Positions 11,201-47,100 of a DNA stretch of 64,000 nucleotides are shown here, piece after piece (position 1 is the stretch's first letter; each line of letters begins with the position of its first letter). The notes under the pieces were generated by a model. The model worked only from the letters and a program-made list of their open reading frames with translations, made no database searches and was not told the origin of the DNA. The translations under genes and the position numbers were made by a program. This DNA comes from Podarcis filfolensis (taxonomy: Eukaryota): the NCBI GenBank assembly GCA_964270895.1, contig OZ185447.1; one strand, given 5' to 3'.

Positions 11201-13555
11201 TGTCCCCAAAAAATACAACTCCAATCAGCCTCAACCAGCATTGCTAGTGGTCAGGGATGATGGGAATTGTAGACAAGGCTGATGCAGAGTCGCAATTTTT
11301 TTAATGTTACTATTATGCTTTCTTAAAAGTTGAGAAAGTCACAGATTCATGTATCTTCTCCATCCTTCATCCATGCATGCAAGCAAGCAGCATTAGAATT
11401 CAAGCACAAATTCCGGCCAGGCAAAAATACATTGGGCAGGAGAGGAGCATGGCTCCAGAAGGTGTATGACCTAGGGAGAGTTCTGAGGGACAGATAAAGA
11501 GGCCTGCATTTGGCACCCAGGCCTGAGGTTTACCATCCCTACTCTAACTACTCATCATCTTAAAAGAAAATTCACCATGCCTCAGGTTCCCTTAGAATAC
11601 TAACAATACAGACATCTCTCAGGGAATTTAATATTGAAACCAAGGCCATGTGTAAGGCAATATCTGACTACTACAATTACTAACCCCTCTTGTCGACAGT
11701 CTGCGATCCAATCTTTCATAACTGCACAGAAGGTAGAAAAATCAACAGCAATCCCTCTCTCTTGAGGGTCCAACATCTTATATAGAGACCGAAACCTCCA
11801 GTCTTCACAGTTCTGCCCTGTCATCTCCTGCAAGTATTCAATGATTCGGAAGACAGACACCTCTCCTATAACCAGAATTCAGGTAGACAGAATTACACAG
11901 GTAGGTAAAAAACTCAAATATAAAAACTGCATAGAACAATAAATCTGGATTTAGATGTCTCTGCTATCTACCAATGCAAGCTATTATGATACGTTTTATA
12001 CGTCTTTGTTTCTCCAGTTTAGAAGAAATGAGGCATTTGTAACTGATAAAACCGTCAGTCATAAATATATGAACTGTATATATAAACTAGTCTACATATC
12101 TGTATTGTTTTAAAATACCCCATAGCAGTAGCTCACAAAGCAATTTTGCTTGGTCTGAAAAGTAATGTGAATTTATATTTAATTTTTAATCCATTAGCTT
12201 CTAGTCTCCATGATTAAAGAAAATGAGTGACTTATCAGGAACCAACTTTCAAGAAAAATAGGATTTTTAAAGGAATAGTAGCGTTGTACCACTGCTTCCC
12301 TTTCCCACCCACTTCCTTCTTATTATCACTTATTTTCTTGTCTTTTCTTCTCTTTCTATTATACCTTAAGTAAAATAATTTTATGTAACTTTGAAGTACT
12401 GGGAGGAGTCCTGGATAATGTCTATCAATGAATGATTTTTATTTATTTTTTTGCACATCCTAGTCAATAAAACTTTGTCTAAGAAGAAGAAAGTATTCCA
12501 TCTTTCTGCTAGGACTTATTGTCATTAAAGTTGACCTGGAATTGTGTGTTTCTTCAATACAGTGATGTTAGGTTCACTGACAAAATGACATATAGCCAAG
12601 AGTCTATAATATATAACCTGATGCTAAACTATTCTGAAAGGTGTTTGCACATCTTAACACAAAACTGATCTCCCAGCAGTTTTGAAGACTGATAGTTCAA
12701 AACTTTCTACCTGTTTGTTCTGGATCACAGGCCTTGAATGTGCATTTCAGAACATGTTCTTCGGAGCACTGGCCTGCATTCAGGGTGATATTCTTGCTGC
12801 TGACGCCAATGCTGTCCTGTGGCATTGCTAAGGAACATGAGGAAGTAATATTTATATAAATGATTTTTTTTCTAAGCCTAGATTATCTGCAGACCAAGTC
12901 ATCCTTCTGGGGCTGTTATGAAATGTATTTACAATCCCATTACTGAGGTGAGGGCATCTCAATCTGCTTGATAAAACCTTGGTAAATCAGCTGGGGGGGG
13001 GGAACTATGGTGGAAATCATATGAACTGGGGCGCTTCCAGGTGACCTTTTTACTGAGCATGCATCTTGATTTGTTTGCAGGGAGATTTATTATGTTACCT
13101 CAAAGCAAGTGTTAATTCAAACTTTCCAGTGCATTTCCCCATCACTTTCCTTTTCATTAAAAGTCTGATCTTTTGGGGAAGCAGATTTGTTCCTCCTTAT
13201 TAATTATAACTGTGTGACCTGAATAATAATAATAATTTATTATTTATACCCCGCCCATCTGGCTGGGCTTCCCCAGCCACTCTGGGCGGCTTCCAAAAAA
13301 ATATTAAAATACTGTAAGACATCAAACATCGAATTTGCTGATATGTGACTGAATCCCAACCAAAAATGGCAACAGTCCGGAAGTGCCCTGAGGAAGGGGA
13401 AATGGTTCTAGGAGCAGATGTTTCTGACGCAGTTACAATACTGTTAAATGACTGGCAGCTTAGAATGACCAATGCCTACTTTCTCTCGACAAGAATGCAG
13501 TTAACTGTCCAACTGCTTCATTTTCAAGTGACTTGTAATAAATATCCTCCATCAT
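2103..13555 (-). CDS. KASH5: KASH5/CCDC155 meiotic LINC-complex protein; partial gene model, C-terminal TM/KASH exons not found in window
   Basis: Frame-consistent GT-AG exons (minus): 13555-13480, 12827-12711, 11865-11685, [10360/10355-10293], 10214-10053, 9632-9515, 9122-9072, 8674-8597, 8483-8427, 7611-7552, 5255-5191, 2695-2608, 2210-2103. Peptides align in order with human KASH5 (EF-hand-like N-terminus, then coiled coil). Adjacent to DKKL1/TEAD2 as in human. Confidence 0.9.
2608..2695 (-). CDS. KASH5: KASH5 exon (LPGDFLENVKTCSQVPAQPLWMEIEESQR)
   Basis: 88 nt, tgcag/gtaaga, phase 2/0; matches human LPEG...PSLGLEIEAIRQ. Confidence 0.85.
3054..3427 (-). mobile_element. Solo LTR in KASH5 intron
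   Basis: TG...CA ends, 5-bp TSD CCTTA (3049-3053 and 3428-3432), minus-strand TATATAAA (3152-3159) and AATAAA (3091-3096), internal 40-bp repeats. Confidence 0.8.
3291..3410. repeat. Three tandem 40-bp units inside the solo LTR, each with a CCAAT box
   Basis: gttctaggaccaatcagactgctgc...atcctatt at 3291, 3331, 3371. Confidence 0.95.
5191..5255 (-). CDS. KASH5: KASH5 exon (ELKLEVSRLQEHLSQSYQDQY)
   Basis: 65 nt, attag/gtaagt; matches human ELRLEISRLEEQLSQTYE. Confidence 0.88.
5390..6690 (-). mobile_element. Degenerate 5'-truncated L1/Tx1-like LINE (ORF2 3' part)
   Basis: Broken frames ...ALEQIKCFGEVAGFKIDTEKTK and YAATAARVLLAQKWK; A-rich tail near 5390; interrupted by a MITE at 6171-6388. 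Boundaries approximate. Confidence 0.7.
6171..6388. mobile_element. Tc1/mariner-type MITE nested in the L1
   Basis: TIR CAGTGGTACCTTGGTT with TA on both sides. Confidence 0.85.
7552..7611 (-). CDS. KASH5: KASH5 exon (KTKYAEELTVTLDEYRLVVQ)
   Basis: 60 nt, tacag/gtaatc; matches human RTRDVESLAQTLEEYRVTTQ. Confidence 0.88.
8427..8483 (-). CDS. KASH5: KASH5 exon (SQISEYENLISCKDAALNE)
   Basis: 57 nt, tgcag/gtgagg; matches human RQLFECEHLICQRDTILSE. Confidence 0.88.
8597..8674 (-). CDS. KASH5: KASH5 exon (NKKLLLEKESSKCKIKDLFTKKAKMK)
   Basis: 78 nt, tctag/gtactt; matches human NGKLLAERDGVKKRSQELAMEKDTLK. Confidence 0.88.
9072..9122 (-). CDS. KASH5: KASH5 exon (VKEQQFLSVQLDKVQEM)
   Basis: 51 nt, tttag/gtgagc; matches human EKEQQHLVAEMETLQEE. 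Confidence 0.88.
9515..9632 (-). CDS. KASH5: KASH5 exon (TQPALEQARVMANELEDLKVFSKSLEEENSKLHTQARQL)
   Basis: Matches human TQQALQFAKAMDEELEDLKTLARSLEEQNRSLLAQARQA; phase 2/0. Confidence 0.92.
10053..10214 (-). CDS. KASH5: KASH5 coiled-coil exon (EDAVDLTNSIQDLQHGNKQL...EEICDLKGKLRG)
   Basis: Matches human ADLLSSLEDLELSNRRLVGENAKLQRSMETAEE; GT-AG, phase 2/2. Confidence 0.92.
10293..10360 (-). CDS. KASH5: KASH5 tentative linker exon ((NS)LGEGYLTSSDHLQRKEKQDL)
   Basis: Long pyrimidine tract with AG at 10361 or 10356, donor gtaaat, 78-nt downstream intron. Keeps frame with both neighbours, but homology is weak. Confidence 0.4.
10478..11142. mobile_element. Young non-autonomous hAT element (665 bp)
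   Basis: 17-bp perfect TIR CAGTGGCGTAGCGTGGG, perfect 8-bp TSD GTGAAGCT (10470-10477 and 11143-11150), CpG-rich interior. Confidence 0.92.
11685..11865 (-). CDS. KASH5: KASH5 EF-hand-like exon (EVSVFRIIEYLQEMTG...FCAVMKDWIADCRQEG)
   Basis: tatag acceptor, donor gttagt (alternative gtaatt 4 nt further); matches human VAQVLAYLEAVTG...FLVVMRDWIAACQ. Confidence 0.93.
12711..12827 (-). CDS. KASH5: KASH5 exon (MPQDSIG...SEEHVLKCTFKACDPEQTG)
   Basis: ttag acceptor, gtagaa donor; matches human SLEEQILNSTFEACDPQRTG. Confidence 0.9.
13480..13555 (-). CDS. KASH5: KASH5 candidate first coding exon (MMEDIYYKSLENEAVGQLTAFLSRE)
   Basis: ATG at 13555, open frame to a phase-1 donor gtaggc that joins exon 12827 in frame. 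Weak resemblance to the human N-terminus (VG..TA...RE). Confidence 0.5.
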
Positions 13556-16839: not shown

Positions 16840-17448
16840 CTACACAAATCCAGAGTGGAGTACTAAAAATAGTTGTGTGGCGCCTTGTATGCCTCCTTCC
16901 CGCGACTCCTGCAGCCAAGCTGGTGCCAAACGTATTGCTCTGCTTTCCTTTTGAGGGGGACAGCCCATGAACTCCATACACCACCCAGGATTGCACGCCT
17001 TGCAATGTATACTATAAGCAAGTCTCCCAAAAGTAACTCCTCAGCTTCCTAGTTCTCTTGCCATTTCCTGCCTAAGCTGAACCATTTCCCTAAAAGTGTA
17101 CAGAAGATGGGATTTTCAGAATGCAGATGTTCTTTTTAGCTATAAATATTTAACAGTTCCCACTGTTGAATAAATTTCTTTGGTGTAAAGAATAAGAGAC
17201 TTTGGTAATTAAGCAGTGTATAAATAGCTTAAATAAATAAATCTGCATTGCGAACAAAGCAACATTTGCACAGCTAGTGGTGTGAATGATTTAATTAACA
17301 AAAACTTTTCTTTTTTTTTTGCTGAATGGAATCTAGAAATAAGTGGATTATGAGGGAAAATACAGAGATTAATATGAGAAGCATAAAACGGGTTGTGAGC
17401 ATTGAAGAGTAACAAGCTATTTAAATCATGGGCCAAAAACTATTGTAA

Positions 17449-17791
17449 TTAGTAAAAGCCAGGCCCAATGTACTGCCCCATTTCATTGGCCAATTGCTTG
17501 AGTTCCTGGAAATCTGCTTGTTTGGGATCAGCCATATCTTCCTCCCATGGCAACTGCCTTTTCTCGTCATAGTCTTCACTGAGCCCCTTTGGTTGGCTAA
17601 TATCTTCCATGGAATAAGGAGCTCTGGGCAGATTGACTAATGCCAGTTGGCCATCTTGCACAGAGTCATCATAATAAGCATCCTCTTTGTCACGCCGCAT
17701 TAGGATTGGCTGGTAGAAAGAGAGCTGTTGGTCTAGTCTACTAATATCCACACTGTTCTCTGGATTTTCACATGTGGAAACTGTTGTATAT
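17449..17791 (-). CDS. DKKL1: DKK-like terminal exon 7 (YTTVSTC...acidic tail...QYIGPGFY stop)
   Basis: cctag acceptor, phase 2, supplies the last Cys of CRD2, TAA at 17451-17449. Confidence 0.88.
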
Positions 17792-17831
17792 CTAGGAGAG
17801 AAAGCAACCGATTGACAAGACTGAATGAGTG

Positions 17832-17888
<57 letters not shown>

Positions 17889-20800
17889 TGCACACACACA
17901 CACACAAACAATATATATTTAGGCACACAGTGCTTTTTTTCTAAAAAAATGTTTAGGGGTACTCTCATTTTCCTACTCATACTGCCCCTCAATGAGGCCA
18001 AACGTTAGAATCACAAAATGTTTAGGGGTATGTGTACCCCTGCGTACCCCAGAAAAAAGCACTGAGCACACACACACACCCCCACACACACTGTACTTTT
18101 CTGTGTATAAGACTAGGTTTTTTTACTTTAAAATTATGTGAAAAACTGTGGGTCATATACACGGGGCAATCTCCCCCCTATTTTCTTAAATTGGAGTCCC
18201 AAAAAGTAGGGGGCGTCTTATACATGGGGGCATCTTATAAATGAAAAAATACGGGGGGAGGGAGTATCATCCCAGTCCAATCAACATTAATTGCATCTTG
18301 CAGAGTATCCTAAAACAATATGTGGAGCAAATGCAATAATATAAGACTTCATTTATTTTATCTTAAATCAGTCTTGCAAAACAGAGTACAATTTTATTAG
18401 CACATAGTTTATTGGGGTATTATTATTGTAATTAATTTATTAACTGCCTTCTGCACAACTGTCTTAATGTGATGTACAATAAAAAGCAAAGCAAAAAAAA
18501 ACATGCAAGAAACAGCAGATACACTTAAAACAAAACTAAAACAATGCAAAACAGACAGTCTTGCAGCTACTTTAGTTGCAGCTTTCTCTTGTGAAGAATT
18601 CTACAGAGACAGAATCCTCCTTACCTTTTACCTCTGCACTTCAGCCCTTGGGCACATGGGCAATACTGGCTAGGTTTGGGAAAGGCTGTGAGGCTGCCCC
18701 AACCCATCAGTCCAAAGAGGGAACTGCTGGGAATCTGGCATACTTCCCCTTCCTTTGGATAAGGAGTGCAGACTGGGAACGAGAGAGCTGTGTTGGAGAT
18801 AGGACAAAGATTATAAAGGATTATGTGAAGAAAATCCATAAAGTAAAATCTGCCTGGAATATCTGCTATACAAGATACACTGGATTGGTTCACACGTAAC
18901 ACTAAGACAAACTATGTCGTGGCATGAATGAGCTACTATACTGGTGCACATTTAGAAAAATTCAGCCACTTAGCTCCTCTCCTTGTGAGTTAAACCATAG
19001 TTAGTCTCTTAGCATTATGTGCAAATCCAGTCTTGTGGTTTGTTTCAGTAGCCCAAACCAAACAGAAGCTATAACCAATACCTGCTCTTGGCTTACTGAT
19101 TGTGAGAATGAGGACAGGGGTTATATCAGGACCATGGTGTGAGAGGCAAAGGTTAACTGCCTCTCCACAGGCACTGTGGTCTCAGTCTGGATTATAGTCC
19201 CCAGGAATTGGTACTTTCAGTTTAAAAGCTTTCACGCAACTCCAAGTAAAGCAGTCAACATCACAAAATATGAGCAGACCAAATACGAGGGTAGGAGGAA
19301 GTAGATTATCACACCGGAGGCATGAGTACATAAAAACCATCTTACAATTGCTGGCAGTGCAACACAGCCCCTGAGCACACTTGTCCTGGCGTGGGTCACA
19401 TCTTGTTCCGCTCTCACCACGGCTCACTCCTTTTGCACACCTGCCCCACACACAGAGGTATCCTAGACAGCATTCCCTGTCCTTCCAGCATATCTAGGAG
19501 ACAAAGCATGATGACGACACAACATCTAGGAGGTGAAGCATGATGACGACACAACATTTATTCTTTGAAGCTCAAAACTAGAAAATTCATTTAAAATACA
19601 AGGCACTACCAGTGAAAAGACCCTGCCTTATTTTATTTATTCAGGATATGCTACTCAAAAGGCCAGCTTCTGTGTTTGCATTTCAAAATATGAGCAGACT
19701 AATACCAAAATTGCACAGGACCTTTTCTCTCTTTTTCTGATACCCTTTTTTTCCTTTCTCGCTCTTGCTCTCTTCCTGGCCAGCAGGCTGTCTGTCAGGG
19801 GACGGGCAGATTCCTCTTGCCAGAGGCCTGAACTGATCACATTTGAGAGCTTTTGAAATTAGGCAGAGGGCCACATGCAGCCTAGGACTGCAGGTTGCCA
19901 GCACTCTTGTAGAAAGACTTTTGCTTTGGAGCCTCTCGTTTTAGAATACCCCTTTCTGCAGTAGAAATATTTTCCAGGGACAGTTCTGGCAGCAAAGTTG
20001 AGCGTACTCACTGTATTCTTGACCTTACACTGCCGACACCGGGAAGCAAGGAAGGACTTAAAGCAGAACTGGTCCTTTTGGCAGTCACTGTCACTCACAC
20101 ATTCCTGCTGGAGAGGAAGGACATATTTAAAAAGGGCTACAAGATCATTGCACTAGCAAGTTCCCTATTTCGTTGCTGGGTAATGGCTGAATTTAAGACT
20201 GCAGTTGGCTTCTGTGGAGCATCTTAGCTGGCTACTAGGATGGGACTTCTCCCTACCTCAGCTCAAACCTGTAAGTTTCCCATAGATAGCTCTACATGTA
20301 AGAAAAGGTAATAGAGTGTTACTCCTTTTGGAATATTAATGGTTACTGCAAACTTTATTTCTGAATGCACAGCAGAATATAAACAGCTCCGTTTCCCATG
20401 TATATTCCCAACTAGCATTGTATACAGTCGTAGGGAATTTAACTGTGTGCTTAAGCACAGGCTCCAAGCTCTCCCATTCCTTGCTTCCCTTGAACTAAGA
20501 CAGGGGTGGGGGAACTTTTTTCAGCCCAAGGGCCACATTCCCTTCTGGGCAGCCTTCCAGGGGCCGCATGCCAGGGGTGGGGTCAACAGCGGTGACTTGC
20601 AAAGGCCAGATTCCTATACAACCTGCATCCAGGGAAGCAAGGACCATAGTTCAAGGGCACATCTTCCGAAGCTGGCAAAAGCATTCAAGAAGATTGTGGA
20701 GCAGAACTGGTGAACTCATAGGGAGGGTGTGCAGCCTACAGAAAGTCCTGATGGCTATTTAATGAGGCCTGTAGGGTCACATTTGGTCGCCAGCCTGAGC

Positions 20801-23333
20801 TTCGCTGCTCCTGGACTAGGAGAAGCTCTGCTGCAGGCCTTCATCAAGAGCCCTGCTAGAGAACTGTAGAGAAGCCCATTGATAGAGCTTTTAATGTTAC
20901 CAACACTTGTGTGGAACTTGGAGCCAGTGTGGTGTAGTGGTTAGAGTGCTGGAATAGGACCCAGGAGACCAGGGTTTGATTCCCACTTGGCTATGAAACT
21001 CACACTGAGTGACCGTGGGCCGGTCACAGTCTCTCTACCTCACAGGGATGTTGTGAGGATAAAATTGGGAGGAAGAGAACCAAGTATGCCACCTTGAGCT
21101 CCTTGGAGGGTGTTATAAATGTAATAAATAAAGAAAACAAAAACACAGCAGCCCCAAGAGTCTATCTCGTCACCTCTCCCACCTCGTGGAAGAATTCAGA
21201 TCAGACAAAAAGAAAGCACCCACACAAGCAGTGCTTGGAGCATATGAAAGACAGTCGGAAAATTGCAAATAAACCTCTTATCCCTCTCAGGCACACCACC
21301 TGTTTTGCCTTACATGCCACAAATTCTCCTGCAAACTACCTCAGTTTGGAAGTGGCATTTCTAGTACACAGATGTTTTTCTTAAAATGTTTGTGCCATTT
21401 ATCTCCACAAGAATCCTTCACAAGTGTGGCGTACACAGGATGCTGAGTGTCGCCTTCCAATGTACAGCACCCATTTCGAGAATTGTTTCAATTCTTACTC
21501 TTACATACAGTACACACACACATAAAGCACAGCTGGAAAATACCGTAGTTTTAAGTATGGTCTGATATGACAGTCAGATGCATAATGATCTCTTGGTGGT
21601 TTGTTGTTTTCTCTTCAAAAAGAAGACATAATGTGGGAAACCTCTTTCAGTTCAGGTTTCCTTTTTCAATGCAAGTGTGAACCTGTTCGATTTGAAAGGA
21701 AGAGTGAAGTGCCAGATAAAACCTCAGAAATTCATTTGGGCGAGTGATTTCCAATGGATCTGCCTCTCCCCATCATTCATGCACAGAAACGTATGGCTTA
21801 TTTTTTGTTTTGTAATTTATTCCAGTCGCAGAGTACAGCTTTTCTTGGTACGGAACTATATAGCGAGCCAAGAACAAGGTTGCTGTTGAAGCTGCTAGTC
21901 ATATACTGAGTTTTCAGATTTTAACAAGAATTTGCTTCCTGTTATCAGATTAACAAGTTGCTCTACTCTGTCTCAAGCAGGGCGGAATTTTGTTCTTGTT
22001 TATTTTCTCTCTCGTGTTTTTCTGTAAAAACAATAACAAAGATGATTTAATTTTTATTGTTTTTACAGGGGGGGAAATACAAAGGAGCATGGTGCTGATA
22101 GCACCAAGGTCACAGGTTTGATCTCCGCATGGGACAGCTGCATATTCCTGAATTGCAGGGGGTTGAACTAGATGATCCTTGGGGTCCCTTCCAACTCTGA
22201 TTCTATTGCATATGGAATATCTTTATTTAATGTTGAGCATCAATCAGTACAAATTTATTCAGTCGATTGCTGTTTCCTGGGCTGGTGACTATCCAATTTA
22301 ACTCCATGTTTTTATCTAGCTGCTCAGATACCAAATTTTGTTCTGTGTGGAAATGATTCTGCATATCTTTATTTCGAAATTTCATATATATTTGGGGATG
22401 TAATGTTTTATTCCATGTTGTGAGGCCTTTTGATTATAGACAGTGAGCCTGAAACCAAGACTGATGGGGGGAAATGGGTTACCTTGGCACAGAACTTTGA
22501 ATGCCCCAGCACAGACAGATTTAACTTACAGGCCAGCTTTTAGGTCTAACCATTTCCCAGCCTGCTACAAGAAGAAAGTGCCAGAAAGGGGGGGGGTGTA
22601 TATATATTTCTCTCTTCTTTCCTTCCTCTCTGCACAGAGACGATTCTAGTCTGTTTTCTTAGAGCCAAATGTTGCTGTTTCTGAACAGGGCTGGGCATAA
22701 TCAAAGAGGAGAGCAAAATTGAAGTAACCTGACGGGCCCTTGATTTCAGTGGGGGAGTTGGGCTGCTCTCATTGAAACCAACAGGACAAACTGCTCACAG
22801 TTTGAGGGTGTAATATCAAACACTGCTGGTAATTACTATAGCTTGTAGGTCAGTGACAATATGACAGGTGTAAGAAGAATTATGGGAATTACGGTATTGT
22901 GGAAATAATAAGAATTACCAGTATACTCCCTTGCTACCAGCTATGTGTGGGGTGGAACTGCTGCCACCTCTCTCTTTCCCTTCAAATTCAACACCTACCT
23001 TTTCCACAGTTACATCTGCACCATACATTTAAAGCACATGCCGCTCCTGATAAGAATCCTGTAAGCTGTAGTTTGTTAACAGTGCTGGGAACTGGACTCT
23101 GTGATAGGTAAACTACAGTTCCCCGAGTTCTTTGGCGGAAGCCATGTGCTTTAAATGTATGGTGTGGGTGTGATGGTAGCAACACTTAAGAACATTTCAC
23201 AGCAGTCACAAATGTGTCTTCCTTCCCTGTGTTGTTTTCCCACTGTTGATTTTAAATTGTAAGCTCCTTGCAAGCAGAGATCTGTGTATGTTGCCTATGT
23301 GCACTGTTACATGCAGTGGTAGCACAGGAAGAT

Positions 23334-23372
<39 letters not shown>

Positions 23373-26300
23373 TGAATCCCAGCCAGGATTCAGGTGGTTC
23401 TATCTGAGCTATTCTGTATTCAGGAACCTGATTCTATAACATTAGAAAAGAAAAATACAAATTGCTCGTTCTCAGGGTTTTGTTTTCAAAAGGAAAGATT
23501 TTTATTTCAAGAATTTGAGAGAAACTCTTTTCTCCTTTCGGAGGATTCTCTCCCCAGCCTGCCACCCTGTGGATGTGAAAGAGGAAATAGCTAGGAAACC
23601 AGAGACATTCTCTGCTGCCCAGGCAAATTGGAGGTTTCCCTCCTGCCTTATATTTTCCTCCAGAAGAAAAGGAAATGATGCTTTCGTGGGAGGAGCTTGC
23701 GGTTTGGGGTGACAGGCAGGGCCTTCTTCTTGATGGGGTGGGGGGCTGTCAAAAGCCCATTCCGAATGGCCAGCAGCCTGTGCCTCCTGTCAGTGGCCGG
23801 CTCTTCCTTTTCCCAGTTGGCTTCGGGGATGGGCTTGCTCTTAAGGTGCTGGGGCAAGCGGAAGATTAGAAAGGTCAGCCTAGGCCTAGGCTGGGGTGGG
23901 CCCAGCTTGAGGAATCTGAGCCCAGTGCTCTCTCTGTCTGCCTCAGCGCCATTTTCTTCCTGACTAGCCACTGGCTTTTTCTCCTGGAAAGATACAGATA
24001 AAATGCAACCAGGGTGAGGATATTACCTCAGTGGTTTGTGGGAATCAGCCTGAGAAGGACTTTATGCTTAGAATGAGAAGTGGGAGGGTTTCCAAGCTGG
24101 GGGTCCACATTCTTTTACCCCCTCCAGGAGAGAAGAGGGGGTCAGAGGAAGAGGAATTCCTGGGATAGGGAAAAGACCAATCTACGGGAATAGGGAGAAA
24201 GAGGGGGCAACCTGTGGCCCTCCAGATGTTGCTGGGCTCCACCTCCCGTCATTCCCTGACCCCTGGTCCAGAAGTTCACCCATCCCTCCGTTTGGGGAAA
24301 GCAGAGGTATACTAGTCTAACAAGGTTTATTGGCCATGATAGTTGAACTGAACTGCCAGTATCAAATAATGGGGACAGATAGCACAGGGCAACTGCAGCC
24401 TTCCATCCCTACTTATAAGCTTCCCAGCGTAAAAACCCACCTGTGTAGATCAGGCTAGTTTCTACCCCTCCCTATTCTCTATCCAGGGAACTGAGAGGCA
24501 TGATCAGAGTTCTAAGACATATTCAAGCCCGGCATAGACATGCAAGGGGGATATGAAGTATGTCTGCAGAAGGAGAGAGGTCTAAAGACCAGACAGAGAG
24601 GTCTGGAGAGACGCATCTAGAATCTAACACACAGCTTGCCACACACACCAAGTCACACGCAACCAAAAAATTAGCTGAGGAAAGGTGAGTGGGCTTGTCA
24701 CCCTCCTGAGCGCACACTGACCTCCTCCTCTTCCTCTTCCTCTTCCTCCGGGCGGGCGTCTGCCTGTTCAATAGAAGTCACCGTTTTCTCTGAAAACACC
24801 ATCTCGCCTGTACGGTTATCAGTCATCTGCATATTTTGAGAGAACAACATTAAGATTGCATGGGAGCAACAGAACAAATGAAGAAGCCTCCTTACTTTTA
24901 AACATTTGTGAGGCGGCATCATGGCTGACGGCAGAAACATCCTTATGGCCAAGGCTCCACAGAGCTATGGGGACAGTTGACTTGGCTTCACAGGGGCAAG
25001 GGGATGTCCTCAAGTACCTGCACTAGACTTGCGACCCCCTTAGGAAAGAGGTGGAGAGCCTATGCCTGTCCCATCAACCCAAGACAACATGACCAGGGGT
25101 CATGGATTATGGGAGTTGTAGTCTAGCAACACCTGGAGAGCACCCTTATTCCCCTCACAGAGCTGTGGTTCTCCACGTGGCTCAACAGTCAATTCCTCTG
25201 CCCAGGGAACTCTGGGAATTGTAGCTCTGTGAGGGCAACGCAGGTCTCCTAACAATGCTCAGCACCCCTTAACAAACTACACTTCCCAGGAATCTTTGGA
25301 GGAAGCTCTAACTGTTTAAAGATGTATGATGCCACTTTAAATGTACAGTGCCAATGGGGCCCTACTCAGATTAGACCCATGGAAACTAATGAATCCAAGT
25401 TAGTCATGTCCATTAACTTCAGTTGGTCTGCTAGCATGGGACAGAACCCATAGTCTACAAACAGCATGCACCAGATTATAATACCAATGGTGGACTGTGG
25501 GAGGGAAAGAATACATGGGGAAAGATTATTCCATGGCTTTGTTGGGATGGTTGGTTACTTGAATTGCAATATATACACGGAGAGCCATTTGTCAGAATGG
25601 GTGAAAGCTGACAGGAAACATGAACTTGCTTCAAGAACCATGTCAAGGTTCAGCCTTGCCAGATAAGCAACTGGGAGTCCAGGACCTAAGATCTATTCCA
25701 GGCTGGCCAAAGGGGTTCCGCTGACTGTGGCTGAGCATCTAAGCTGTCCTCTGCTGCCTTGTGCATATATTTTATATATTACTGACGAAATGCCTTTTAG
25801 TCTAGAATTTGATGTCCCCAAATGGCTACCCAACGACAGGGATGGCCTGGACACCACCAACTATATTGATCAGAACTTGCACCCCCAGGTATTGAATTCC
25901 CAGCCAGTGAGGTAAGCTGAGCTTAGTTATTCATGGTTCTTCATTTTGGTTTTGGTTTTCAATAGCTGACTCACTTTGCTGATTTCATGGTGGCTGTAGA
26001 CAGTGGCATTCCCCACTTTCCTCTGGTGCTTCTCCTCGTTGTGATAGTTTGAGGGCAGCTTGCTGATATCCACAGAGGGCTCAAGCTGGTCTTTCCCCAG
26101 CACGTCCTCCTACACAATAGACAAAAACGGATCATTATACTGTGTAGGGAAAGGAGACAGAGGGTCCCTTCGGATGAACTGTTTATTGAGCATCCTGATT
26201 CCCTTGGACAAAACTTACACAGAGGTTAGATTATGCGCGGTCTTTATTTAACATTCATTTTTATTTGTTTGCAGGGAGGTTATACAACAATGAGCGTTAG

Positions 26301-28310
26301 TGTTGCTTTCATTCCAATTCGCTTTTGGAGTCTTTGCATGTCTTCCGGTATTTTATCCTTTCCGCTCATTTCCTCATCACTTTCCTAGCCATTTCTTTTG
26401 GCTTTTTTTGGCTTTTTTTTTTTTGGCTTGGACTTTTCTTTGGAAAAGTCCATTTCTTTTTCAAAGTGAATTTCATTTGCACTTCAATTGTGCAAACCTA
26501 AACTCTGGGGATGCATTCGGATCCCACCTGCAAAATGCTCACTGTTTGTGCAAGATACCGTCTTGCCCACCCTAATTTGACCTTTTTACAATAAGGAGAG
26601 TGACAGGGAAAGTGTGAGTCAACAGTTGCTTAACACAACCACCGTATAACCTCTCCAACAAACAAAATGATCGATAAAGAGCCATCATTGTCATTCCGCC
26701 CCACAAACTTCATGCAAAGAAATCAAGTTGAATGATTAATAAACAGGTCTGGAAGCCCAACAGCATCTTCTCCCTCTTTCCAAAAAGTAGCCTTCATCAG
26801 AGGAATAGGTTAAAATAATAATAAACATAAGTTTGTTTTCTTACTAGTCTTCTGTTTATTTTTGAAATAAATAAATAACAATGTGTTTTTTTAAAAAAAG
26901 AAACAAATTTGAGGAACAGCTACCAAGAATGATAGCCTTAATGGTTCGTAGCTGGTCAATTTCATCAAAGGGTACTTTCAGATGAGAGATCCCTCTCAAG
27001 TATGGCTGGCCAGACACCACTTAACTGTTTAACTGCCAAGGCCCAAGATGTCTAGCAGAATCCTCAGTGCCTGCAGGTGAGAACCCTCCCCTTTCCGCAG
27101 CTTCTAAGAATTCTCATGGAGGAAAATAATAAACAGGTCAGTGTGATTTCTGCAGCAAGGCAGAAACAATTTAGATTTAAACTTGAAGTTTCAGTCTGGA
27201 AATTAACCATTACAAGACAAGATGCCACACCCACAAAATGCTCACAAGCTGTTGTGCTGTCAGGGCAGGACTTTGATGCATACTTCTATAAGACCACTGA
27301 GTCTGAAATTGCTCACAAGAGTAGATTTAACGGGTTTATTATGCCAGCACAAAGTATTAATTTCAGCATTCAAATTTCAAAGCAGAAATTAAGGATTAAG
27401 GTGCTTTCCAAATATGTGGAATTGGGCATTCTTAACCCCCAAACCCCAGCTTTTGAACCTTAAAATCATGAGAGATTTGCTTGTGAACCTCTGAGAAATC
27501 AACATTTTACATTCCCAAAGGCTGGGAATTGATGCTATTCTAAATTCCCATAATGTAATTAGCACTGGAACACTTTCTCATCCACCTCCAGGGGAAAGCA
27601 CACACCCAAACAAACATTAACTGTGAACACATCATTATTTAAAGCACACGACATGCCCCAGAGAATCCTGGTAACTGTAGTTTACTCCCACAGAGCCACC
27701 ATTTCCAGCACCACCAATAATACACTATAGTTCCCAGGACTCCCCCCACCCCAGCCTTTCTGGAGAAGGAAAATGTGTTTTAAATGTATTGTGCGTATGC
27801 AACCTGAGTGCATCATGAGCAAGAAAAAGAATGAGCAGGTTGTGGGGAATCAGATGATAATGAGAACGAGATGGAGAAAAGTTGTTTGAGATCTTCCTTG
27901 GGCTTTAAATGTAAAGGATGGGCAGATTCCATCCAGAATTCCTAGATACTGTGCAGTGTTTACTGCAGCCTCCACCAACCTGGGGCTGGTGGGAGTCGCA
28001 GACCAAATCAGCCAGAGGATACCAGGATTATTGCAAGAATCCTCCCTTTAAAAAACCCCCAACTCATTACAGATGTTCACAGAGCATCTGAAGCATCCCT
28101 TCTATTATGTGGAATGGGTGTGTGTGGATCTGAGGCTCCCCCTCTCCCTCTCTCATCATCATCATCCCTTACCCTGCTCTGCTCAAAGATGTTGCGAAAC
28201 TCCTTGAAGAGCCTCTCCACGCTGGGGGGCAGGAAGGCAGCAGATGCCGTGCTCCTTCCTTGCATCAGAGCTGTCAGGCACCATAATCCCCACACCAGCG
28301 GCAGCAGCAT
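17449..28310 (-). CDS. DKKL1: Dickkopf-3-like secreted protein at the DKKL1/Soggy locus; complete, 7 exons, 374 aa
   Basis: Exons 28310-28173, 26109-25975, 24826-24722, 20104-20012, 19493-19346, 18787-18625, 17791-17449 give 1125 nt in one frame. Signal-peptide-like N-terminus, soggy domain (KLPSNYHNE...VGNATV...MTDNRTGEMVFSE), two 10-Cys domains. Symbol assigned by synteny. Confidence 0.88.
17840..17885. repeat. (TA)n microsatellite followed by (CA)n
   Basis: Direct reading; lies near the last DKK acceptor. Confidence 0.95.
18625..18787 (-). CDS. DKKL1: DKK-like exon 6 (CRD2: LSFPVCTPYPKEGEVC...YCPCAQGLKC)
   Basis: cacag/gtaagg; matches DKK3 LLFPVCTPLPVEGELC...RCPCASGLLC. Confidence 0.94.
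19346..19493 (-). CDS. DKKL1: DKK-like exon 5 (ICWKDRECCLGYLCVWGRCAKG...CAQGLCCTASN)
   Basis: cctag/gtaag; matches DKK3 LCTRDSECCGDQLCVWGHC...CQPGLCC. Confidence 0.94.
20012..20104 (-). CDS. DKKL1: DKK-like exon 4 (CRD1 first half: ECVSDSDCQKDQFCFKSFLASRCRQCKVKNT)
   Basis: cagcag/gtgagt; Cys spacing of DKK3 ECIIDEDC...C...CQPC. Confidence 0.93.
20921..21117 (+). mobile_element. tRNA-derived squamate SINE (MIR/Squam-like)
   Basis: gagccagtgtggtgtagtggttagagtg A-box head, cacagggttgttgtgaggataaaa core, A-rich tail. Related copies near 38210, 43230, 50936 and 61560-61742 (minus). Confidence 0.7.
22085..22206 (+). mobile_element. SINE with tRNA head and CR1-type 3' tail
   Basis: ggttgaactagatgatccttggggtcccttccaactc...attctat is a CR1-like 3' terminus. 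Confidence 0.7.
23334..23372. repeat. (GTT)n microsatellite
   Basis: Direct reading. Confidence 0.95.
24722..24826 (-). CDS. DKKL1: DKK-like exon 3 (MTDNRTGEMVFSEKTVTSIEQADARP plus 9 Glu)
   Basis: tgcag/gtcagt; matches DKK3 ITNNQTGQMVFSETVITSV. Confidence 0.9.
25975..26109 (-). CDS. DKKL1: DKK-like exon 2 (soggy domain: EDVLG...SKLPSNYHNEEKHQRKVGNATVYSHHEISK)
   Basis: tgtag/gtgagt; matches DKK3 NLPPSYHNE...KVGNNTIHVHREIHK. Confidence 0.93.
28173..28310 (-). CDS. DKKL1: DKK-like exon 1 (signal peptide MLLPLVWGLWCLTALMQG...)
   Basis: ATG at 28310, hydrophobic N-terminus, donor gtaagg, 46 codons. Confidence 0.85.
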
Positions 28311-43955: not shown

Positions 43956-44165
43956 GTAACCCTCCTGACACCATAGAGCCTGGCAGCTGGGGCCAGGGGG
44001 CCAGCCCCTCTGGGGAGATGGGGGACGCTGGGGAGAAGGGTCTGGACAACGATGCAGAAGGGGTCTGGAGCCCTGATATTGAGCAGAGTTTCCAGGAGGC
44101 CCTGGCCATCTACCCACCCTGTGGGAGGCGGAAGATCATTCTTTCGGATGAGGGGAAGATGTATG
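43956..44165 (+). CDS. TEAD2: TEAD2 first coding exon (IEPGSW...[38 protein letters not shown])
   Basis: ttcag acceptor, gtaggt donor; invariant TEA N-terminal motif. Confidence 0.97.
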
Positions 44166-47100
44166 GTAGGTGGAACTTAACTTTGACCCATTAGACCGGC
44201 TGCTCTTGTCCTTGGTTCTCTTTGGGGATCGTCCTGCAAGCCATAATATATGATGAGAAGCAATGGGCTTAGAATACGTGAGGTAAAAAAAGAAGACGAC
44301 GCTTTTCTAGCTCCCTGAAGAAATGGAAGGAGTTGGGAAGGTGGCCACTGATGGTGCTGTGTTCCTGCGGTATACCGCTAGCAGTGCCTTTTCCCTTCCA
44401 GCTCTGAGAGGGGGAAAGAGGTGGTCCTCAGATGCAGCCTTCATGGTACTGTGCCATAGATGCTGTGCAGAAAGCTCTCTTTAGGGACAGAAAAGAAACA
44501 AAAGAGCCAGCAGGGCCAGGAAGAGAAATGAGGGAGCTAAATGCACCATTGTAAACAGAGGCCCTACAATGTGCCGCGCTAGACCTATAACGACAGAGAC
44601 TCACCTGGAGGCAGTTCTTACTCTCCATAGGCGAGTGGCTAATGACAGTTCAATTTTCAGTTATACAATTTGTACCATCCCTTTCTTTTAAGGAACTTCT
44701 GCATCAATATCCTGCATTTGGACAAGTCACTCTCTCTTAGCCTGACCCACCTCACAGGGTTGTTGTGAAGATAAAACCACAGAAAGCACCCTGGGGTCTT
44801 TAGAGGCAGTGTGGGGTGTACTTTTGGTGATGGGGGACAACCGTGTGCAAGGTCTGCTGGAGGAGGGGTCAGGTTTGCATCCGCCCACCTTTAAACGTCT
44901 GCAGTGGGCGTGACCTGACAGTCCAGATGATTCAGAAGTTAGCAGGGTTGTGTCTCTGAGCACGTGCAGAGTTGGGGAGACTGCAACCTCAGCATGCTTT
45001 GACCTGCCCCATGTGGCAAGTTATCACTGTTGTCAGCAGCATGGTCAAGAGAGGCGGGGGAATGCCACCTCTGTATATGGTGCTCAAGTTGGATGGGTTG
45101 TTTTCCTGATTTCTTGCCTCTTCTCTCTCAGGCCGCAATGAACTCATTGCCCGCTACATTAAACTGAGGACAGGCAAAACACGGACAAGGAAACAGGTAA
45201 ACGTGATGGGCTTGACATGAAGCCTAAGACTGCAGGAAATAAATCCGAGGTGTGTGGGGAGAATGAGGCCTGGTGAGATTTCCTCCTTTCTCTCCACAGA
45301 GTTTCCTGCTAAGTCTCTCCCCCAACTCCTTCCACAGGTCTCCAGTCACATCCAGGTTTTGGCCCGGCGGAAAACCCGTGAGATTCAGGCCAAGCTCAAG
45401 GTGAGTCCCTTCCCTGCATTCCCTGAAATGTTTATGACAAGCTTGCACCTCTGGATTCCCTACCCGTCCTGCTGAAGGAGTAGTAGTAAGGGGGGTACAT
45501 ATTTACCCCCCCAAAGTCCCATAATGCTTTGCTGGTACTTGGGACAAGCTCTAAGTTTGAGGGAAATTATTGGGAAAGTGCCATCAATCAACCCCCTCCC
45601 CTCCCCGTCTCTGAGGGAATTGTTTTTTATTATTATGTGTTCCGTTTATTACCCATCATTCACCATCAACATTAAAAACAGCTAAAACAAATCACAGTCA
45701 CTGGAATAGGGTGGTTCCTGAAAACACATCTCTCAGGTGTCAAAGGTGGCAACTACAGTGGTACCTCGGTTTTAAAACAGCTTAGTTCACGAACAACTTG
45801 GAATTCGAACGCCGCAAACCCAGAAGTAGGTGTTCCGGTTAGCGAACTTTTTTCAGAATCAGAACTGTTCCGTTTTGAGTGTTACACTTCCTTTTTCAGT
45901 GCCACACTTTCGTTTTGAGTGCCCCTGCTCCTGTTTGCACATGAATAGGAGTGGGATGGGGCAGCTCAGCTGGGGACTGGAAAGCCTCCGCTTCCCAGCT
46001 GAGAGATCCCCGCCCCACTCCTGCTTGCATGGGAGTAGGAGCTGGATTGGGGCTGCTCACATGGAGAGGTGCAGGCTCCATCACACTTTTCCATTGAGGG
46101 GTATATGGCTGTGTTCACCTCAATAGAGAAGTTTAAAGGAACATCATGTGCCAAGGCAGAGACAGCCCAACAGCTGCCTCAGCAGTGGTTTTGGGGCTCT
46201 CAGATGCAGCTGCCGGGCTGCCTCCACCTTTGCCACCCCAGCAACTATTCCGCCTGGCTGCCTTCAGGTGGTGCAGGGGCTCTGATGCTGAGGTGGAGCT
46301 CCTTTAAACTTCTTCCTTGGGGGGAGTGAGGCGTGAATCCCTCAATGGAAAGTGTGACAGAGCCTACACTTCCCCAGCTGAGCAGGCCCATCCAGCTCCT
46401 ACTCCCGTGCAACCAGGAGCAGGGGCAGGGATCTCTTTGGAATGCTTTGGTTTTAGAATGGACTTCCAGAACGGATTAAGTTTGAAAACCAAGGTACCAC
46501 TGTATAATGAAGGCTTCAGGCCTAGGGGCTGCTACAGGGGATGCCTTCTCTTGGGCTGCTACCACCCCATCCCAAACATCTGACAGCCCCCGCTGCCGAC
46601 CTCAACATCTGAGGAAAGAAAGCACACTTTGGGATATTTAGGATATTTAGCCATTTAGGGCTTTAATGTGAGTGCCTTGAGTTTCCCGGATAACAGAAGT
46701 GGGGCAAGCAGCTGTGGTGGCAAGTGAGAAGAGCTCTTCCCAGCTGCAGTGAGGTAGCCGCCATTTTAACTTCCCCAAAGCCCTGTCACCTCCAAAGTAG
46801 CATTGTGCTGCATCTGCAGGGGGCTGGTTTTCTTTAAGTTGCCTGCACTGGACCAAGCATGTTGTTTTTTTCAAGACTGTCGTCCCGTCCCACCTGTCCT
46901 GCTTGGAGCTGGGAGAGGAGCTCTGAGCAGCTGCAGCAAGCAAGGGGAGACATCCGTCTTAATCTTGGCCCTCCTACATCCCTGATGTTGGAGCATTGCA
47001 TTGGGCCCTGGGGAGGAATTAACAATGATGGCTCCCTAGCAGCTGCTCTGAGCGCCTCTCGACACGAAGCAGACAGAAAGGGGCCCAGTGCAGGCAGCTG

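Follow-up and report, generated by a model that had tools for sequence, protein, structure and literature searches.

A 64,000-nucleotide stretch of contig OZ185447.1 (assembly GCA_964270895.1) from the lizard Podarcis filfolensis, called the window below, carries an orthologue of DKKL1 (Soggy), a relative of the Dickkopf protein DKK3. This gene probably works with two outputs, a Soggy-type and a DKK3-type product. A shared 5' part, exons 1-3, is followed by two alternative 3' modules: a single terminal exon, here called exon 4', and the distal exons 4-7, which encode both cysteine-rich domains (CRDs) of a full Dickkopf protein. The textbook trait of DKKL1, the absence of CRDs, fits the short isoform only and does not hold for the long one. 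The CRD-less definition of DKKL1 describes mammals, not the history of the gene.

DKK1, DKK2 and DKK4 are Wnt antagonists that bind LRP5/6 and Kremen. Mammalian DKKL1 (Soggy-1) is a small sperm protein, an acrosomal glycoprotein. DKKL1/Soggy has been reviewed as a DKK3-related protein without CRDs, and the function of the soggy domain is there called unknown (PMC10778571). The sole comparative paper found states that reptile DKKL1 holds only the Sgy domain; it describes a testis-enriched turtle gene of four exons, next to CCDC155, with a short product of 222 amino acids that has the Sgy domain only (PMC10967326). In the searchable literature, no account was found of a DKKL1 with CRDs, of two isoforms at this gene, or of DKKL1 as a DKK3 paralogue cut short. 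In NCBI and Ensembl, these reptile proteins already go by the name 'dickkopf-like protein 1', and the records carry the Dickkopf_N domain; the existence of such database models under the DKKL1 name lowers the novelty of the gene described here. Its long protein is an uncharacterised addition to the known Dickkopf family, not a new kind of system.

Gene structure and the long product

The seven-exon coding gene, rebuilt from the sequence, occupies 28310..17449 on the minus strand, with its ATG at 28310 and its stop codon at 17451-17449 (exons in table 1). All six introns (6/6) have GT..AG borders, and the exon phases join as a single open frame of 375 codons. An earlier, sequence-only reading of this DNA had described an intact seven-exon frame with two sequons, ten cysteines in each CRD and an acidic tail. 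The rebuilt gene has all of these; only the stated length of 374 amino acids had to be corrected, to 375. The model is 98.1% identical to a P. raffonei RefSeq isoform (P0105), and the exon structure is the same.

The 375-residue protein holds 21 cysteines: one in the hydrophobic N-terminus, ten in CRD1 (129-177) and ten in CRD2 (190-269). Twelve residues separate Cys177 from Cys190 and form the linker between the two domains. The N-terminus (MLLPLVWGLWCLTAL..., GRAVY 1.02) is conserved in orthologues and constitutes a putative signal peptide. Sequons NAT (80) and NRT (95) lie in the soggy-type region, whose core is alignable with DKK3. Conserved elements of this core are LP.(N/S)YH, GN.T and DN.T, and in the exon 2 region the pairs L-P, Y-H and G-N are invariant across DKK3 and DKKL1 proteins.

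Domain searches and structure prediction agree with this layout. The Pfam family Dickkopf_N (PF04706; cut-off 25 bits) matches the 98%-identical proxy P0105 over the full profile, 1-51, with 47.5 bits (E 2.3e-12), and exon 4 of the window alone with 27.3 bits. Scanned singly, the soggy exons, the tail and exon 4' matched no Pfam family; Pfam holds no soggy model. By phmmer, CRD2 matches the DKK1 CRD2 chains of the LRP6 complexes 3S2K, 3S8V and 5FWW (E 6.5e-4 to about 7e-4). An AF2 model built on a 19-sequence alignment predicts three long beta strands for the soggy core (69-112, pLDDT about 79) and folds both CRDs with confidence (pLDDT about 80-88); the tail is unconfident save for a short C-terminal helix. 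The best Foldseek match in the PDB is the CRD2 of DKK1 in an LRP6 complex (3S2K_C; probability 1.00, TM 0.73). Further matches are the prokineticin-family toxin MIT1, the CRD1 of DKK4 (5O57, root-mean-square deviation 1.8 Å), the CRD2 of DKK2, and colipase.

The tail, residues 271-375, is an acidic segment of 105 residues with an isoelectric point (pI) of 4.15. Its last 20 or so residues (FQELKQLA..MGQY.GPGFY) are nearly invariant from lungfish to lizards; the preceding 70 or so vary freely. A second tail motif, RRD.E..YYD (window 17600-17700, minus strand), consists of a dibasic pair followed by acidic residues and tyrosines. It is kept from lungfish to lacertids and alligator, and is absent in Sceloporus, Rhineura and Eublepharis. 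Judged by its residues, it could be a processing or tyrosine-sulfation site.

The alternative terminal exon and a proposed two-output mechanism

Intron 3 (4.6 kb) hosts exon 4', an eighth coding block that had been missed. Phase 0 is common to the end of exon 3, the acceptor of exon 4' and exon 4. Joined to exons 1-3, exon 4' gives a Soggy-type product of 237 amino acids, and its own contribution is basic (pI 11.0). The exon is 97% identical to its counterpart in Zootoca, and the encoded tail equals that of the short RefSeq isoform of P. muralis (P0041), bar a few substitutions. In BLASTP comparisons, this tail matches the C-terminal half of DKKL1 from bilby (E 2e-7) and platypus (E 2e-5). A profile built from the short isoforms of squamates recovers DKKL1 of marsupials and monotremes (1e-30 to 1e-17), together with short forms of tuatara, turtle, crocodile and caecilian, the caecilian tail being weakly similar. 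On these matches, the DKKL1-specific C-terminal region is encoded by exon 4'.

The sequence-only reading had taken a full DKK3-like gene as the ancestral state of DKKL1. The presence of the CRDs is upheld; the view of a gene with a single output is not, the tail of exon 4' having escaped it. The ancestral gene probably had two isoforms and was more than a full DKK3-like gene. The proposed mechanism runs as follows. (i) Exons 1-3 would supply the signal peptide and the N-glycosylated soggy domain, and their phase-0 end could join either 3' module. (ii) On route A, the proximal terminal exon 4', with its own poly(A) signal, would yield the 237-residue product with a basic tail, of the mammalian DKKL1 type. 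(iii) On route B, exon 4' would be skipped and splicing to exons 4-7 would yield a secreted glycoprotein of 375 residues with DKK3 architecture: soggy domain, CRD1, 12-residue linker, colipase-fold CRD2, and an acidic tail with its conserved end motif. (iv) Splicing plus polyadenylation at exon 4' would compete with use of the distal exon 4 as splice partner, and this would set the route. (v) Mammalian DKKL1 would be the remainder after loss of the distal CRD module, which would have decayed in separate events in snakes, Anolis and, incompletely, turtles. (vi) Frogs would have retained the CRD module and lost the soggy core.

Orthology with DKKL1 and paralogy with DKK3

A maximum-likelihood tree of the soggy region (44 proteins) separates DKK3 of tetrapods and ray-finned fishes from a DKKL1 clade at 100/100. 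The latter comprises 26 rows, including echidna, platypus and four marsupials, and mammalian DKKL1 is nested among the CRD-bearing proteins of lizards, alligator, axolotl, the frog Ascaphus and lungfish. The tree of the CRD region (37 proteins) gives the same split at 100/100, and the order of species within each of its clades is that of the species tree. Phylogenies of the two regions taken separately, as had been suggested for this gene, thus both part DKK3 from DKKL1. A separate DKK3 is present on another chromosome-scale contig in Zootoca (P0200), Sceloporus (P0168), Hemicordylus, Eublepharis, Pogona, Tiliqua and others. These sequence comparisons support the earlier proposal that the window gene is the orthologue of DKKL1 and a paralogue of DKK3, and that mammals later lost the CRDs. 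Two properties of the trees weigh against it: both are unrooted and hence do not date the duplication, and mammalian DKKL1 is represented in them by monotreme and marsupial sequences only.

DKKL1 and DKK3 are old paralogues. Their duplication would date to the 2R genome duplications, as part of the TEAD1/TEAD2 paralogon. A later, lobe-finned-specific duplication, distinct from the 2R event behind TEAD1 and TEAD2, seems unlikely. In its favour, when the exon 7 tail was used in an exhaustive phmmer search, all relatives came from lungfish, amphibians, squamates and turtles, apart from one crocodilian-like Logan contig (P0005); ray-finned fishes and sharks gave no match. The unrooted trees would also fit a root on the branch of ray-finned DKK3. 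Yet in the human genome, as is established, DKK3 lies near TEAD1 and DKKL1 beside TEAD2, a linkage that bears the signature of a block duplication. The DKKL1 clade has a long stem, and in both clades the species follow the species tree, which likewise fits an old split.

Constraint and transcript evidence on the proposed two outputs

Both 3' modules are conserved as coding sequence. Comparison by blastn with Sceloporus, a member of another lizard family, covered window positions 28400-21150 and 20950-17300 (without 21149-20951) and aligned only eight blocks, which are the seven exons and exon 4'. The agreement of the gene model with its relatives is well above what chance would give. The block at exon 1 extends over 28369-28163, and exon 3 is likewise among those conserved. 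Ratios of non-synonymous to synonymous substitution rates (dN/dS) were calculated by the Nei-Gojobori method against the close relative Zootoca and the distant Sceloporus. They were 0.175 and 0.186, respectively, for the CRD exons, 0.10 and 0.31 for the tail (the rest of exon 7), and 0.17 and 0.29 for exon 4'. The low values in the CRD exons and in exon 4' indicate purifying selection on the coding sequence of both 3' modules. The CRD cysteines are invariant, 20 out of 20, across 19 long DKKL1 and DKK3 proteins.

Annotation and RNA data bear on how the modules are joined. RefSeq predicts both isoforms in P. muralis, Lacerta agilis, Zootoca and Rhineura, and Ensembl does so in P. muralis; for P. 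raffonei, only the long one is listed. Models in which soggy region and CRDs are joined exist in RefSeq for at least 10 squamates and alligator, and Ensembl agrees with RefSeq on the same 373-residue protein in P. muralis. Two RNA-assembly contigs of 1.7 kb (L006, L007) contain an uninterrupted open reading frame (ORF) of 382 codons with the soggy region, both CRDs and the tail, and the encoded protein is close to that of lungfish. Runs of a sister species labelled as RNA contain 0.43-0.47 of the sampled words of exon 7, compared with 0.53 in its own DNA, and 0.97 of those of exon 4'.

Both routes would appear to be used in this lizard. Several points weigh against that reading. The RNA labels of the sister-species runs were guessed, and contigs from RNA runs may derive from pre-mRNA. 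Logan contigs with ORFs of exon 7 or exon 4' were found (P0003, P0004, P0240, P0005, P0115), and the ORFs of P0240 and P0115 begin in apparent intron sequence. Finally, RefSeq splits the locus of Paroedura picta and annotates the CRD module as a separate 'DKK3-like' gene (P0002, P0028). The five Logan contigs were rejected as evidence of splicing, since none of their ORFs (0/5) reaches the preceding exon.

The split Paroedura locus would also fit two transcription units, a short DKKL1 (exons 1-3 and 4') and a downstream DKK3-like gene (exons 4-7), with the 375-residue protein an artefact of annotation. This is improbable. Exons 4-7 lack a signal-peptide start exon of their own, yet they keep 20 cysteines and a dN/dS of about 0.18; a module without a signal peptide that is constrained like a disulfide-rich protein makes sense only as a secreted product. 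Exons 3 and 4 are compatible in phase, both being in phase 0. Joined models come from two annotation pipelines, in the 10 or more squamates and the alligator noted above, and the lungfish-type mRNA contigs hold the soggy region and CRDs in one ORF. In frogs, the CRDs directly follow a signal peptide and helix that resemble exon 1. The N-termini of the Paroedura models, for their part, are unrelated to anything else and lack a signal peptide.

Relics of CRD exons are real in Anolis, python and turtle, and the CRD exons of the window might likewise be read as decaying, untranslated remnants, as in Anolis. This reading is very improbable and is largely refuted by the intact frame, the cysteines and the dN/dS: all six introns retain intact splice sites, the frame is open, every one of the 20 cysteines and the C-terminal motif is in place, and dN/dS is 0.18 against both the close and the distant lizard.

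Comparison with known Dickkopf proteins

The closest known counterpart of the long product in design is DKK3 (Dickkopf-3, REIC). The order of parts is shared: a putative signal peptide, a soggy region with the same two sequons, CRD1, a linker some 12-13 residues long, CRD2 and an acidic tail. The 20 cysteines can all be aligned. The lizard CRD2 has the two-residue insert that DKK3 carries after the CC motif, and it lacks the H-F-W of DKK1. The sequence-only reading had called this domain DKK3-like and unlike DKK1, citing TASNSLSFPVC after CC; the string is present as given, and the alignment to the CRD2 of DKK1 confirms that H-F-W is missing. Differences from DKK3 are equally clear. The lizard protein falls in a separate clade (100/100), lacks the LNEMFREVEELMEDTQ helix motif of the DKK3 N-terminus, and has a longer tail whose end motif has no parallel in DKK3; its gene lies beside TEAD2 and KASH5 and carries an internal alternative terminal exon. 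The DKK3-like overall architecture would suit a translocated DKK3 orthologue, the alternative that the sequence-only reading itself had named, but this was rejected and retains next to no probability, because both trees exclude the gene from the DKK3 clade (100/100), lizards own a separate DKK3 on another contig, and the DKK3 N-terminal motif is lacking.

DKK1, DKK2 and DKK4 share with the lizard protein a CRD1 of the Dickkopf_N family and a CRD2 of colipase fold. They have no soggy domain, and their linker is about 50 residues long compared with 12 in the lizard. In place of the DKK1 stretch H-F-W, which we take to be an LRP6 contact, the lizard CRD2 reads S-L-S-F with the two-residue insert, and it has two further loop insertions. 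Published linker lengths are 13 residues for DKK3 and 51-56 for DKK1/2/4; DKK3 is reported not to bind LRP6 or Kremen2, and is said there to bind CKAP4 via its CRD1 (PMC10778571). By analogy with DKK3, the long product would lack LRP5/6 binding of the DKK1 type and would be expected to act as a secreted modulator unlike DKK1.

Mammalian DKKL1 corresponds to the lizard gene in position, head-to-head with TEAD2 and with KASH5 downstream, and in the soggy-domain tree. The short lizard isoform (exons 1-3 and 4') has the same make-up and a homologous tail. Monotreme and marsupial proteins lack CRDs, whereas the lizard gene keeps them under selection. The frog proteins annotated as 'dickkopf-related protein 3-like' (Ranitomeya, Rhinoderma, Leptobrachium, Xenopus laevis) belong to the clade of long DKKL1 proteins and share the same C-terminal motif. 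They differ in lacking the soggy core, the mirror image of the mammalian loss.

Occurrence in other vertebrates and repeated loss

Exact spliced coding sequences from Zootoca, Sceloporus and Alligator sinensis show exons 1-3, 4' and 4-7 in the same order as in the window. Exon sizes are nearly identical across the three, and exon 5 has 148 nt in each. Relics of the CRD exons were sought by tblastn (E < 1; E < 0.1 for Anolis and python). None was found in the 4.4-kb gap between DKKL1 and KASH5 in platypus, and none in garter snake. In a python (Liasis), there is a relic only of the very end of exon 7. In Anolis carolinensis, exon 6 contains a stop and a glycine in place of a cysteine, exon 7 carries a frameshift, and the search detected neither exon 4 nor exon 5. 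The turtle Mauremys has an exon 4 minus one cysteine and an intact exon 5; exons 6-7 were not found there. Loss of the CRDs in mammals, as previously proposed, agrees with the relic-free platypus gap. Judged by these sequences, mammals are not alone in losing the CRD module: snakes, Anolis and, in part, turtle share the loss. The proposed tBLASTn search for decayed CRD exons gave a positive result for Mauremys (exons 4-5) and a negative one for the platypus gap.

The turtle relics lie in Mauremys mutica at L002 15799-16267, downstream of the annotated DKKL1, and are unannotated. The exon 4 relic reads ..CRELK.. where CQECK is expected, and exon 5 keeps every cysteine. In sea turtles, ORFs resembling exon 7 are filed as separate unnamed proteins (P0006 cluster). 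The soggy exons of A. carolinensis (L009) are unusually divergent, with NYH reading DYR and GN reading EN, and the annotated Anolis DKKL1 extends over 26 kb, overlapping the oppositely oriented TEAD2.

Frogs other than Ascaphus have kept the putative signal peptide, the CRDs and the tail, and have lost the soggy core (no NYH motif); in the examples P0010, P0012, P0047, P0013 and P0014, the CRDs directly follow the signal peptide and first helix. The DKKL1 searches returned no bird sequence, from which no conclusion is drawn.

Some database models combine the two modules in another way. Those of Podarcis lilfordi (P0021, 452 residues) and Pogona (P0024, 449 residues) read exon 4' straight into CRD exon 5; since they fuse two alternative 3' modules, they are chimeras and probable mis-annotations. 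The comparison thus flags several annotation problems: models that are chimeric (P. lilfordi, Pogona) or split (Paroedura), and the relic exons of turtle.

Locus features and neighbouring genes

The gene lies head-to-head with TEAD2 and upstream of KASH5, as had been described from the sequence alone, and both neighbours were recovered by tblastx (table 1). KASH5-like exons continue on the minus strand from about 13555 downwards. The KASH5 product of garter snake (L003) carries Pfam KASH_CCD, and in platypus the gene order is TEA-domain gene, DKKL1, KASH_CCD gene. KASH5 lies downstream of DKKL1 in turtle, snake and python, and a TEA-domain gene upstream in a caecilian.

Table 1. Positions of the DKKL1 exons, poly(A)-type motifs and neighbouring coding exons in the window.
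Feature	Position	Strand	Description
TEAD2, first coding exon	about 43976..44167	+	tblastx 70% over 64 codons to the TEA-domain gene beside platypus DKKL1
Exon 1, coding part	28173..28310	-	ATG, putative signal peptide, first helix of N-terminal region; 46 amino acids; donor gtaagg
Exon 2	25975..26109	-	soggy core, LPSNYH motif, NAT sequon; 45 amino acids; block conserved with Sceloporus
Exon 3	24722..24826	-	second half of soggy domain (MTDNRTGE...) with NRT sequon and poly-Glu run; phase 0 at its end
Exon 4' (alternative terminal)	23648..23983	-	in intron 3; acceptor tttccag|GAG, phase 0; 111 codons and stop
AATAAA poly(A) signal	23501..23506	-	about 140 nt past the exon 4' stop; motif only
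Exon 4	20012..20107	-	5 Cys, first half of CRD1; both ends in phase 0
Exon 5	19346..19493	-	second half of CRD1, 12-residue linker, start of CRD2 up to CCTASN
Exon 6	18625..18787	-	central part of CRD2 with Cys 5-9; aligned to the CRD2 of DKK1 (3S2K)
Exon 7	17449..17791	-	last Cys of CRD2, acidic and probably disordered tail, C-terminal motif FQELKQLA..MGQY.GPGFY, stop
ATTAAA poly(A)-like signal	17290..17295	-	about 155 nt past the long-isoform stop; motif only
KASH5 (CCDC155), first detectable coding exon	13465..13555	-	tblastx to the KASH5 gene of the garter-snake locus L003

Three repeat features accompany the exons. A poly-Glu run of GAG/GAA repeats at the end of exon 3 (24722-24750, minus strand) differs in length among close relatives, with nine Glu in the window and seven in P. 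raffonei; exon 3 measures 105 nt in the window, 99 nt in Zootoca and 90 nt in Sceloporus. A tandem duplication of 32 bp (19494-19557, minus strand; ..CACCTCCTAG / ..TGTCTCCTAG) immediately precedes exon 5 and takes in the polypyrimidine tract and AG of the acceptor. Splicing at the upstream copy would lengthen the message by 32 nt and throw it out of frame. The duplication is present in Zootoca and absent in Sceloporus. In intron 6, at about 17830-18100, microsatellites of the (TA)n and (CA)n types stand directly upstream of the exon 7 acceptor.

Significance for the Dickkopf family

A wider proposal can be put forward tentatively, with rather more doubt than confidence. The DKKL1 locus may have been dual-output from its ancestry on, and the long product may be a fifth bona fide vertebrate Dickkopf ligand, retained for some 400 million years from lungfish to lizards and crocodilians, with a C-terminal docking or sorting motif of its own and receptors distinct from those of DKK1/2/4. 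Mammalian Soggy would then be the surviving minor isoform. The long product would have been discarded repeatedly, in mammals, snakes and Anolis, with turtles in the process, and frogs would have discarded the soggy half.

If the two-output reading is true, the origin of Soggy would be explained: it would be the proximal-terminal-exon isoform of a sister gene of DKK3. An unstudied full-length Dickkopf would also join the set of Wnt modulators of lizards, crocodilians, amphibians and lungfish. Natural knock-outs exist for each half of the protein, with mammals, snakes and Anolis lacking the CRDs and frogs lacking the soggy core, and these could be used to probe the roles of the soggy domain and of the CRDs.

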